Shown piece by piece: positions 26,301 to 32,300 of a stretch of DNA of 64,000 nt. The DNA is from Ascidiella aspersa (lineage: Eukaryota), in contig OZ004613.1 in assembly GCA_963924565.1 (NCBI GenBank), forward strand, positions 21,638,001-21,702,000, written 5' to 3'. Each line of letters starts with the position of its first letter. The stretch's first letter is position 1. Made by a program: the position numbers and the translations under genes. The notes beneath the pieces were generated by a model. The model did no database searches, was not told the DNA's origin, and saw nothing but the letters and a program-made list of their open reading frames with translations.

Positions 26301-29300
26301 TTCCCCATCTACATCGACACCGTCAAGAAGGGCTCGATGGCTGAAGAAAAGGGCGTTAACCGAGGTAGGTGTGCTTAATCCGCACTGTTCACTGTCAGAT
26401 GCGAGTTTCTTTCAAATTAAATGTCTTTTCCTACAAAGAATGTATTGTTGTTATCACTTTGCCGCCATTATATGTAAATTGAGTGAGCGCGTTCGTGTAA
26501 TTTTGTTTGTGTACTAATTTTTTTTTTTTTTTTCTTATAAAAAAGTATGCGCAAGAAAGACTGAGAATGGGTTTGGTGTAGTTTTTATAAATTTTTCCCA
26601 TTCCGATATCCTTTGAATGGTGTAATAAATTCATTGTGGCGACTGACTGGACTAGATACTACTATTTTTATTAAAACGTTTTGTCATTATTAACATCAGA
26701 ACCAACATTTATTTTCAGGCGACCTTTTGATGGAAGTAAACGGCCAGAACTTCGAAAAACTTAGCAAGGAAAAGGCGCTCTCCATTCTGAAGAAAAACAC
26801 CGAATTAAATCTGACCCTTAAAACCAGCTTGTTTGGTAAGTAGAAATGCTTTGTGATTGTATTTGTCGCCGAATACCCTTCTTGACAGAATAAATTGATT
26901 TTTATATCCCTAAAAAGTGTTTCGTGTTTTTTTTAGTACAATTGCATTGGGGGATTATTCTACGGCGTCTATAAAAAAGTGTTTGATAAACCAAAGTAAT
27001 AAATAACGGTCAGCTTTGCAAAACACAACCTGTAGATATTAGTTTAATGTTTTCACGAACTGTCGGCTTCAACCTCGCTTAAAGGCTTGTGGCCTCTCCC
27101 GAACGTGTATTTAACTTATAAACGACCGCAAAAAAGCAAAAACAAACCCACTCTTGATCAACGAACTTTCTCGAACAACGCACCCGTCCAATGACGCTAT
27201 CTCTTCTCTCGTTTCCCTTCCAGCGTTCAAGCAAATGCTGGAAGAGCTGCACAACCCGCAGAAGAAGAAAAAGGGCAAGGGCGACGATAAGCTACCGCAC
27301 ACGCCAGGGCACCGCGCCGGGCGCATGTCGCTCACTATGATGTCAGAGAGCGGCGCCGACACTTACGACACCAAGCACAGAAAAGGTGCGTATTCTCTTC
27401 GGTTACTATTGTGTTCCCGAAAAACTCTTATTTTATATAACGTTGAGCGATGTAAATAATAATCTTCATGGGCTTTGCCTTGTGTAAGAAAGGCTATTAT
27501 TTTATTGAATTTATTTCGGCTGTTTGGCGGCAGTTTTATAATCTGTAAACCCATTTGTTGCAAAATTAAACATATTGAATAATTGGTCTATCATATGATT
27601 GGTCAAAAGTAACAGAGTTTCTCTATATATAAAAATCTGATATCGGTATAACTATTGTTTAAAAATGTTGTTTTTTACTCCTATTTACTGTAGAATTTTA
27701 AAATCCTAAAAGTAAACTAGCTTTATTATATTGATTAATGTTCCGCTGGCGGCTTGTTGGTTTGCCGAGAATTTCCTCTATGTCGTGCATACAAAACGCT
27801 GGCAAATGAACCTTGTTTTTGTAGCCTCGTTTGCGGGAAAAACCCGAAAAATGAGCATTCTGAACAAGATATCCAGTTTTCCCAACTACCTGAACGTGTT
27901 TATGTCGTAAGTGGCCCCATTTCTGGTCCAAACACCAGAAAAAAAACGACTTGTAGCAGTCTAATGGCTGCTATACAGTGCACCCCGAAATGTAGATGTT
28001 TTAGTTTTAGCCGTGATATTGTCTGTAGTGCATAACGGTGGCCATTAATTCATTTGGTAGAGGGTAGTTTTGATTACTGTGGGGGTGGGTCGTTTTCGGT
28101 TTCGTACAAGACCCATAAATACATCTGCTTACGTGATGCCGTTTCCTAAACCTTTTTTGGCGAGGAAATTTTGTCACGCTGTGGATTTAGCACAACGCTT
28201 ATGATTAAAGTCATTGGAGGATCGAATAGTGAAAAAACTATTTTACCACCCGACAGGCGGCGGATCGTTCACCGCCAAAACAAAGCGTTTTATCACGAAA
28301 CTTCACGTGCTGCCGAAGATGATCACGTTCGAGTAAGTTCTCTCGTAAAAAGCTTCTTTCTCGCGCACACTTTTGCACTCACGATCTATTTCGTGTCCCA
28401 AGCTCTTACCTCAGTCTACTTGCAGCCTTTGCGTCGCGTAATTGCGATCCTATCCCACACCCACACCGCTAACCGCTTGACTCTATAAAAATATGTAGCT
28501 GCTTCGTTGTATAGCAGACTGCTAGCCTGTTGACCTCCGCCTGTTTTGCTTTTCCCTTTCTACAACTACAACAATTAAACGTTGCAGGTGGGACGCTCGG
28601 CCGCGCCACAAGTAAACTTAAGAAAATGTTTCGCAAAGACAATAGCTATAACGAATTTATGGCCAGACAGTAAGTCGTCGTGATATTGGATTCCGTTTTT
28701 TTATTTTTTTTACTTTTATTTTTACGTTGCGCCGATCTATTTCTATTTTCGAATGACTTTTTCTCAAATCTTTGTATTGAGAAACAAAACAATCAAATCA
28801 GTTTTTTGTTTTTCTTTTGGTTTTGATTACTCTGAATGTTAGACTGGATATACTTTTGAAGTTCCTTGAACAAACATCCATTGATTTAGGAAGATTTTTG
28901 CTTCTACAAATGAGTAGCAAGCTACTAGATACAAACTCGTTCTTAGGAAACAAATTAACTTCCATTACATTTTTTAAAGAATATACAATCTTGATTGTTT
29001 TCTGCATTATCTTAAGGCGCGAGCATCATAAATCACTCACATTCATTTCATTTGTCATCATTTACTTGTTTTCTACAAATTTTCGTTCACAACACAAATC
29101 TAACACTTGCATGATTAACATATCTTGAGCACGCTCATTTGTATTTATGGCTAAAGACTGGAGTATGTTGAATTAGAAAATTAAAAAATAAAAAAATAAA
29201 TGAAATTTAAATAAAATTAGTGTTCTCTTTTTCTAAATAGGTACACAAAAAATTATATATTTTTTTTAATTTTAAAAAAGGTTACTTCGCATTACGTTCT

Positions 29301-32300
29301 TTGCAATGTGTTCTGCATACAGGCGTGCTCATGGTCTGTTCAAAATATTCTGATTTCCACCATAAGTTCCAGTTTTGTTTTGTGGTGTGTTACCGTGTGT
29401 TCGAGTTTGCATGTGCTTATGAGTAGCTTTTGTAGGCGCCGCATGATTTTTGCCTGGTACATTTTTAGCATGTAATAAATTGTTCTTGTTTTTTTACTTA
29501 AAAACATAACATAAAACAATTTACAGTTTACAGTAGGAATGTGGCACTTGTAAACAGTACTCCCTGTATTTGTTTTTATTGTATTAAGATTAGTTGTTTG
29601 CCATAAGCTCATCCAGAACCTATGTTACTTTTAAAAAGTTTTTTTTTTCTTTATTAAAAAACACAAAATTCTTTATTTATAACGTTGTATAGTATAACCG
29701 TGCCACATTCGTGACTGGTAAAAGTTTGAATAATTAATAAACAAATAATTTACAATTTAAAAATGCCGACAACCACGCAGCCCAATGTTTGTTTGGTAAA
29801 AAAAACAAAAACATTTTAATTGTATAACAAAACGGTAAATATTGAAATTTGGCTCTGAATTGCAGCATTTTGGCGTTGCTTGGCATTGTGTCGCTTGTGG
29901 CTGTCGAAAGGTGTTGAACTTGTTGTAACAAAAAAATAATGATAAACGTAACTTTGTGCACTTGGTGACATGTTAACCGACAGTCGTCTAACCATCTGCA
30001 TGTTGTTTTTTCTTTCCCTCCGCATTGCCTCACCAACCAACCAACCAACAAATACACATACACCCTAAAAAACAAACACTCACGCCCACCCTCACTTCTG
30101 TCGCATACACAACGTCCTGTCAATCACGCGCCCATATTTACCTGTGTATGACTGAAACCCCACGCACGAATCCCTCGTCTACATCTGCATTGCCCTGTAA
30201 ACATCCCATTTCTGTTTTCGCCACTTGGTTTTGCCGCTCATTGCTCTTGCGCCGTCGTTCAATTTTTTTTTTTTTTACCCCACCTTAAACAAAAAAACGT
30301 GACAACTCTTTATTCGTTTCAAATTTTCGCGATAAACGTTCTCGATTTTTATCGAACGTGACGACTTCCGAAATGCCACCGCGCCATTAACCCCTGGCAA
30401 AACGTTGAACGTCGAAACGTGTTGCATTTTCTTTTGCGTAACCTTTTGTAAACACACACTTGACTTTTAAATAAAATTTCCTTTAATAACGCAAAAACTG
30501 CCATTTCAAAAATTCCACCGTGCTTATAAATATTTATATTTTTTCTGTGTAAAATTTAATTATCCATGATATCCACAATCCATTTTCCCATTATATGTAA
30601 AAATAAAAATCACTTGCCCTAATACTCGTTAAAACTAAAACCAACCACACACGAAAAACCTCAAAAAAAAAAAAAAAAAAATCCCCAATCGCATAAATAC
30701 GATACTTCAACACCCACCAAACAATAAATAACACCGAACACTCAAAAACACCTATTCACCACCTCCACAAAACCACCCATCATACAACAAAACCAAAACA
30801 GTGGGGGAGAGGGTCAGATGAGCGTCGACGATTCGTTCCTGGCGCCGAGTTCGGCCCGGGCACGCCTGGCGCCGGGCTCTTTCGCCACCGTGGACGGCCC
30901 CAGGTCCTTCAGGCAGAGTGCCACCTTGAGCCTGAGCAATCCGGACCTGCTTGATCCGGCTGCGCTCGAAATCGGAATGGTGCAAGGTAAAGCAAGGCGC
31001 TGTTCGCGCGGACGAAAATCTCCAACGTTTCTTTGTGGAAGGGAATTTTTTTTTTGTTTTTTTGAGTATTTTTATGCTTTTTGGTGCCAAAAAGCTGCGA
31101 GCAACGATTATCTCAGCTTTTATCTATTGGGGACCCAAGAAATTATAATTCGTTGTTGTTACAACGGTCAATCAATAACCGTCCTATGAGACTGCTATAA
31201 TAAAGGTTGTTCAGTAAAGTGTACAGGGTTGTACAAGGCTTTTTGAAATGTCTTGTAAATCTATCTGTGTTATACAAAAAGTTATGTTTTGCCTGTTCTG
31301 GGTTGTTGGGGCTGATTCTCAAAACACCAGAACTTTTAGCAAATCGACTTTTCATGTCTGTGTTGCCCCAAAATTGTATTGTGTATTCCCCTAAAAAAAT
31401 ATAATATTTAGAGCCAAGTATCCTCGCTGCAGTAGGCCGCCTTTAGATCATAATGTTTGTCCCTTTTCTTCTCACTTATGCGTTGTTTTATTGTCCTTTC
31501 GCGAGACACCAAATGTACAACCCGTTTTAGTGCACGCCAATCGTCGCCTAACATTTCCAGTCCTGGTTAAGTAGGGCGTGCGAGTAAGGCTAGCCAAAGT
31601 CCTATATTCTGTAATTAGGACAAATGCCTGTACCAAGTGTTGAAATCGGTTCTTCAGATACTTTCATGATTTCCACTTGTTATCCAATCAGACTGTCTTG
31701 TTAAATATCGGGTACTGGTAAGCGGTACATAGGTCACCCCTAAAGCAGAGGCAGCCGGTTTGTCTTTACAACCCCAGCTAACAGTGGCCTTTTGCACGTT
31801 GTTGCGTTTGCAGAGGTGTCAGAGGACGTACTGAAGGTGTACCGGGCCGACCAAACGCACCGCTTCGTTTGCGTGAACCGAGACACGACCGCCGGGGATG
31901 CGGTGATCTTCGCTTGCAAGGAGTTCGGCATTATCGACGACGTCGATAACTACGCCCTGTATAGAGTAAGAGGCTCGCTTTCGATAACTACCGTTGATAT
32001 TAGCTGCCACTTGAAACACACTTTGAAAATTATGTGTTTTTTATCGAATAATGGCAATTTCTTTTAATGTTACTCAGACGCGATCTGAACAATATATGTC
32101 AAAACCGTGGTGTTTTCATGTGGAGTAGACTGACCATAAACGTTAGAGAAAGATAAGTTTTTATCGCAATCTGCAAAAAAGAGATTTAAATCTAACACCG
32201 GTCGCGAAATTTATGGCTTTTTTATTGATTGTACTTTTTATCTTCTCGGAATTGTAACGTCCATGCAAATCGCGTGTATATCGCCAGGTTCGTGTAAAAT

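Follow-up and report, generated by a model that had tools for sequence, protein, structure and literature searches.

Introns whose branch point lies a long way upstream from the 3′ splice site, with an AG-free zone between the two, are established in vertebrates, where branch points have been verified up to about 400 nucleotides (nt) from the acceptor (PMC1431707). In such introns the first step of splicing is AG-independent and the second uses the first downstream AG, with branch sites typically located at the 5′ end of the zone (PMC1431707; PMC5378181). For AG-exclusion zones after Gooding et al. (2006) we require 100 nt or more free of AG and, at the end of this run, a genuine 3′ splice site; human cases include PTB exon 11 (zone of 381 nt, branch at -351), nPTB (438 nt), and GABBR1 exon 23 (288 nt; PMC1431707). 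An intron of human PTPRS contains an AG-free zone of 1126 nt that was published without verification and that measures 229 nt in the mouse ortholog (PMC1431707); because the mouse zone is so much shorter, the human length may be partly incidental. One human zone of 369 nt was ascribed to a repeat (Gooding et al. 2006, PMC1431707). Here, we describe an 816-nt AG-free zone that ends at an acceptor of the RAPGEF2/6 gene of the ascidian Ascidiella aspersa, in a window of 64 kilobases (kb), and we compare it with these systems and with a second zone of the same genome.

The window is the whole stretch of DNA that was analysed, G000:C7:21638001-21702000, from a genome of 308.6 Mb, and positions below are counted from its first letter. 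A first-pass annotation of this window had given the usual reach of zones of this kind as up to a few hundred nt, a figure that stands for verified branch points (about 400 nt) and falls short for the unverified human zone of 1126 nt (PMC1431707). The features that carry our argument are as follows.

29982..29983, + strand: last AG ahead of the zone; the candidate branch A follows 8 nt downstream (AG count)
29984..30799, + strand: AG-free zone, 816 nt, 9.3% G (AG count and composition)
29988..29992, + strand: CTAAC, candidate for the distant branch-point sequence, with its branch A (29991) 809 nt upstream of the acceptor AG (motif scan)
29997..30002, + strand: Rbfox-type motif TGCATG, lying after the branch site and before the pyrimidine tract (motif search)
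30003..30021, + strand: polypyrimidine tract of 19 nt with one G (17/18 pyrimidines, 12 T), of which 30006-30021 is pure pyrimidine (16 nt)
30800..30801, + strand: acceptor AG, without a pyrimidine tract and without YTAAY (Y, pyrimidine) for 175 nt upstream (placed by ortholog junctions)
30802..30986, + strand: exon of 185 nt encoding the PDZ-RA domain linker (placed by tblastn and ortholog junctions)

We read the 816-nt stretch as an AG-exclusion zone that is probably kept by purifying selection, with a branch site about 0.8 kb upstream of the acceptor being used at least sometimes; judging from the sequence, we give this reading a probability of roughly 55%.

The AG-free zone and its boundaries

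On the + strand no AG occurs from 29984 to 30799, and the first one reached is the acceptor at 30800-30801; both points had been made in the first-pass annotation, and our recount of the 816 nt and the match of the junction to four ortholog models agree with it. The same annotation had proposed ranking AG-free zones and had judged chance implausible. In a sample made up of the window and 200 kb of the same chromosome, both strands (264 kb, or 528 kb of strand sequence), plus 12 small loci, the zone stands first, with a next-longest AG-free run of 174 nt and a mean gap of 17.7 nt in the 264 kb; the second-longest gap within the window itself is 144 nt. Runs free of GA/TC, AC/GT, or CA/TG never exceed 245 nt in the 264 kb. 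With 275 A and 76 G, the zone is predicted to contain 25.6 AGs and contains none, the minimum in 20,000 shuffles being 11, and the base preceding G is C in 39 cases, T in 35, G in 2, and A in 0 (P ~3e-14), which bears out the judgement on chance. The deficit is specific to AG, since neither GA (17 seen, 25.6 expected) nor GT (29 seen, 21 expected) is excluded from the zone. About 350 positions of the zone are one substitution away from an AG; neutral divergence of about 1% would thus already make one, and active selection would be needed to keep the zone AG-free.

The zone is single-copy by a search of its own genome, which disposes of the possibility, raised in the first-pass annotation, that AG-free repeat copies exist elsewhere. 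Inside it, ACCA and A19 are the sole repeats, both of them short, and it lacks a tandem repeat structure; no Rfam family matched the region 28600-31200. The fraction of A+C is 0.63-0.69 in the first 200 nt, goes down to 0.42, and then reaches 0.76-0.82 in the last 200 nt. By minimum free energy (MFE) the zone folds no better than its shuffles (z = -0.17), and a stable structure bridging branch site and acceptor is ruled out on this ground. Enrichment of the motifs YCAY, YGCY, CACA, ACGT, TCTT, and AATAAA in the spacer is weak or absent beyond composition, YCAY being present 29 times against 21.6 expected, a value reached in 7/300 shuffles. Six ACGT cores lie within 125 nt (30297-30420, as AACGTG, AACGTT, and GAACGT); their zone-wide count is not significant after dinucleotide shuffling, and the cluster probably arises because only C or T may precede a G in the zone.

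The host gene, judged by its translated exons, is the ascidian RAPGEF2/6 (PDZ-GEF). RasGEF_N, RA, and RasGEF domains are found in the exon translations, and the closest proteins, the RAPGEF2/6 of Phallusia mammillata (P0008), Clavelina lepadiformis (P0005, P0007), and Styela clava (P0004), all come from ascidians, which rules out an insect gene. The exon layout was obtained by tblastn with P0005 and P0004, and exons were analysed singly, with only single boundary bases added to complete split codons. An exon junction falls at 30802 in 4/4 ascidian RAPGEF models (FD/GGE, ARI/GGE, STD/GVEQ, and DQH/GGM, with the slash at the junction), and the acceptor at 30800-30801 is well supported because the junctions of these four protein models coincide with it. 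An in-frame acceptor at 30823 is unlikely, since the residues of the intervening stretch, 30802 to 30823, are encoded in the orthologs too. The exon 30802-30986 is present in all four ortholog models, and with 185 nt its skipping alone would shift the frame; a scan of metagenomes with its peptide turned up no relative. The exon begins with a G-run, TGGGGGAGAGGG (30802-30815), preceded by about 200 nt of intron with 0-4% G, so that a very sharp step in G content stands at the splice site.

Candidate distant branch site, weak proximal context, and a second zone

The zone opens with CTAAC, TGCATG, and a U/C-rich tract, all three of which had been named in the first-pass annotation and are located at 29988-30021, with CTAAC beginning five nt past the last AG (29983). 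A scan for YTAAY followed by at least 16/18 pyrimidines found 48 such modules in the 528 kb of strand sequence (0.09 per kb); about 0.003 would be expected by chance within 30 nt of the zone's 5′ edge, where one is present. For the 47 other modules the next AG follows after a median of 28.5 nt and a maximum of 94 nt, compared with 809 nt for the module at 29988.

The proximal context of the acceptor is weak. We measured 23 acceptors of the gene, a set outside which the next exon's acceptor near 31815 lies, and at -22..-3 the pyrimidine content of acceptor 30801 is the lowest of the 23, at 0.40, with 0.50-0.95 in the other 22; the earlier remark that this acceptor has no polypyrimidine tract is thus confirmed. 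The AG-free zones at the other 22 acceptors measure 16-85 nt, and most other acceptors of the gene have a YTAAY 17-40 nt upstream. No YTAAY lies within 175 nt upstream of acceptor 30801, and the conventional position offers only TTCAC at -42.

Composites of the form CTAAC-N(2-4)-TGCATG occur twice in the 64 kb, at 29100-29113 and 29988-30002, both in the intron that holds the zone, and 3/13 of the + strand TGCATG motifs of the 64 kb fall within 29108-29997. This placement of TGCATG hints at Rbfox-type control.

29100..29113, + strand: first CTAAC-N-TGCATG composite, same intron, one of two in the window

A second AG-free zone of similar length lies in a teneurin intron of the same genome.

G000:C8:23126768-23127562 (L022 1745-2539), - strand: AG-free zone of a teneurin intron, 795 nt, located via the EGF_TEN family

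None of its 55 Gs follows an A (P ~5e-14). It starts with AG-ta-TTAAC, continues with a pyrimidine-rich stretch of about 75 nt, has one TGCATG inside, and reaches an A+C fraction of 0.80-0.88 in its last 200 nt, as compared with 0.76-0.82 in the RAPGEF zone. The two zones thus share a layout of branch site, pyrimidine tract, G-poor spacer turning A/C-rich, and then AG. BLAST of one zone against the other finds A-runs alone in common, which argues that they are independent; together with the single copy of the RAPGEF zone, this lack of homology rules out a repeat origin for the latter.

Proposed mechanism and competing explanations

The RAPGEF zone has several of the features by which such introns are recognized (Gooding et al. 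2006): its length and a real acceptor, a branch site and tract at the 5′ edge, the lack of a good conventional site, and a sequence that is not an AG-less repeat. It is best read as belonging to the known class of distant-branch-point introns, at an extreme length and with an unusual A/C-rich spacer, and its freedom from AG would be best explained by use of the distant branch point. By inference, 29991 would serve as the branch point, the spliceosome would reach its 3′ splice site over a span of 0.8 kb, and the arrangement may play a regulatory part. In such a mechanism, the CTAAC and pyrimidine tract at 29988-30021 would be where U2AF and the U2 small nuclear ribonucleoprotein (snRNP) assemble, with weaker sites deeper in the zone possibly serving as well. 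Step 1 would form the lariat at this module independently of any AG, and step 2 would take the first AG downstream, at 30800-30801. A new AG inside the zone would become the acceptor and extend the exon, and the mutation would be removed. The G-poor, unstructured spacer would probably slow removal of the intron and carry regulatory sites.

Several points weigh against use of the distant site. Verified branch points lie no more than about 400 nt from the acceptor, and greater distances are reported to lower efficiency (PMC1431707; PMC5378181). The zone also contains further, weaker candidates, TTAAC at -410 and CTAAT at -178, and the weak conventional candidate TTCAC at -42 (30755), followed by a C-rich stretch, could be the productive branch site. 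In the teneurin intron two more AGs come after the first, and 52 nt on stands a conventional-looking acceptor (...ctgccgcag), in frame with the EGF exon; because of these, the acceptor used there may be another than the first AG, and the teneurin intron differs from the RAPGEF locus in this respect.

The explanation that survives best beside ours is that a conventional weak branch site near the acceptor, such as TTCAC at -42, is the productive one, while the upstream CTAAC and tract would bind U2AF and U2 as a decoy or a holding site from which no product arises. Such an arrangement would still exclude AGs, because any AG downstream of the strong module would become a cryptic acceptor, and TTCAC at 30755 does fit yUnAy and has the C-rich stretch next to it. 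A decoy, however, would account for missing AGs close to the tract, but for their absence from all 816 nt only if lariats made there do proceed to look for an AG, and the proximal context on which it relies is the poorest in the gene (pyrimidine content 0.40). We regard it as unlikely.

Considerably less probable is an internal transcript, made from an intronic promoter and trans-spliced to a spliced leader at the acceptor, in which the AG-free stretch would be an outron and the ATG at 30819 would start a short RA-RasGEF isoform. Many ascidian genes undergo trans-splicing, and outron lengths of about 460 nt have been described (PMC3074122), an in-frame ATG does lie 17 nt past the acceptor, and a TATAAATA-like motif is found near 30526. 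Against this, the ATG at 30819 has C at -3, and its Met is not conserved (GGESQVTVDD in Clavelina, GVEQVSVDD in Phallusia). The exon is joined to upstream exons in 4/4 ortholog models, and AG depletion is not mentioned for the Ciona troponin I outron (PMC3074122).

It is hardly credible that the zone arose neutrally, from low-complexity sequence poor in G and rich in A/C or from a decayed element, and has no bearing on splicing: although no other 816 nt of the window are as poor in G (9.3% G) and the human 369-nt zone from a repeat offers a precedent (PMC1431707), none of its 76 Gs follows an A (P ~3e-14), it is single-copy with short repeats only, it starts at a branch-plus-tract module and ends exactly at an ortholog-supported acceptor, and the unrelated teneurin zone has the same layout.

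Two further sets of features lie nearby, alternative exons upstream of the zone and a stem around the exon downstream of it.

27825..27906, + strand: candidate alternative exon alt1, 82 nt, phase 1 in and phase 2 out, with splice sites tttttgtag/cc and tc/gtaagt and the same phases as alt2 and alt3
28257..28332, + strand: alternative exon alt2 (A type), 76 nt; peptide match: A-type segment in Clavelina P0005 and in Phallusia P0008
28588..28669, + strand: alternative exon alt3 (B type), 82 nt; peptide match: B-type segment in Clavelina P0007 and in Styela P0004
30653..30685, + strand: upstream stem arm, including the A19 run 30663-30681, pairs with 31041-31073
31041..31073, + strand: downstream stem arm, 55 nt beyond the donor, pairs with 30653-30685

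A and B exons replace each other between the Clavelina isoforms P0005 and P0007, in keeping with the mutually exclusive pair that had been placed here in the first-pass annotation. The alternative exons may number three rather than two; the peptide of alt1 is weakly like that of alt2, and alt1 is absent from the four ortholog models. Because the lengths of 82, 76, and 82 nt are each 1 mod 3, including two alternative exons would break the frame, and mutual exclusivity more likely rests on reading frame than on branch-point proximity. Steric exclusion of the tropomyosin type does not apply, because the alt3 intron starts at 28670 and the candidate branch at 29991 is 1321 nt from this nearest upstream donor. 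That the spacer governs the A/B choice, as the first-pass annotation had suggested, finds no support in this analysis. A short frame at 28081-28125 resembles the start of exon A and may be a decayed exon duplicate. The exon 30802-30986 and one alternative exon (76 or 82 nt) sum to 261 or 267 nt; joint skipping would be frame-neutral and would remove the whole PDZ-RA linker (27224-31816).

The two stem arms form a stem of about 30 base pairs (bp), made of the A19/U-run with ends UCCC:GGGA and CCUC:GAG, that brackets the exon 30802-30986. Its predicted duplex energy of -31 kcal/mol ranks first among 2176 partner windows spanning 22 kb (mean -7.7, standard deviation 3.2), and the stem is present in the MFE fold. 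As modeled, it could loop out the exon, favoring skipping or back-splicing.

On a broader view, which we hold only tentatively and at less than even odds, the two zones may represent a recurrent class of long-spacer introns in neuronal signaling and adhesion genes, with branch site and tract about 0.8 kb from the AG and an unstructured, G-poor spacer turning A/C-rich between them. The 3′ splice site would be found across about 800 nt, 2x the verified limit, and the spacer, tied in the RAPGEF gene by the ~30-bp stem to the downstream intron, would be a delay or detention device for regulated splicing.

Significance and relation to known systems

If the branch A at 29991 is used, its distance to the acceptor would be the longest with strong sequence support in any chordate, and the intron would be a natural substrate for asking whether step 2 reaches the 3′ splice site through scanning or through diffusion, and how far such a search can extend. 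That one genome holds a pair of unrelated zones, each of about 800 nt and alike in layout, suggests a designed architecture rather than an oddity. It would also connect distant branch points with slow or detained introns and with regulated neuronal exons, in a way that can be tested in the vertebrates' sister group. Such introns would be large mutational targets, because any new AG should alter the protein, which matters for annotation.

Among described systems, the exons 2/3 of alpha-tropomyosin and those of alpha-actinin resemble the RAPGEF locus in combining a CTAAC-type distant branch and an AG-free zone with adjoining mutually exclusive exons. There, the branch (-175) is too near the upstream donor for exclusivity to be broken, and the zone lies ahead of one of the alternative exons. 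The RAPGEF zone, in contrast, precedes the common downstream exon, and its candidate branch lies 1321 nt from the nearest donor.

The likeness to PTB exon 11, nPTB, and GABBR1 exon 23 extends to a sequence that is AG-free up to the acceptor, a consensus branch site and tract at its 5′ end, the lack of a good conventional branch site, and a regulated gene with neuronal links. Unlike these human cases, the ascidian zone is about 2x as long as any with a verified branch, and its own branch is a candidate only. Its spacer is G-poor and A/C-rich toward the 3′ end rather than pyrimidine-rich, and its acceptor is without a tract. PTPRS is the match in scale, with a very long AG-free zone and several candidate distant branch sites, none of them verified in either gene; unlike PTPRS, the RAPGEF zone has a counterpart of similar length and layout in the same ascidian genome.

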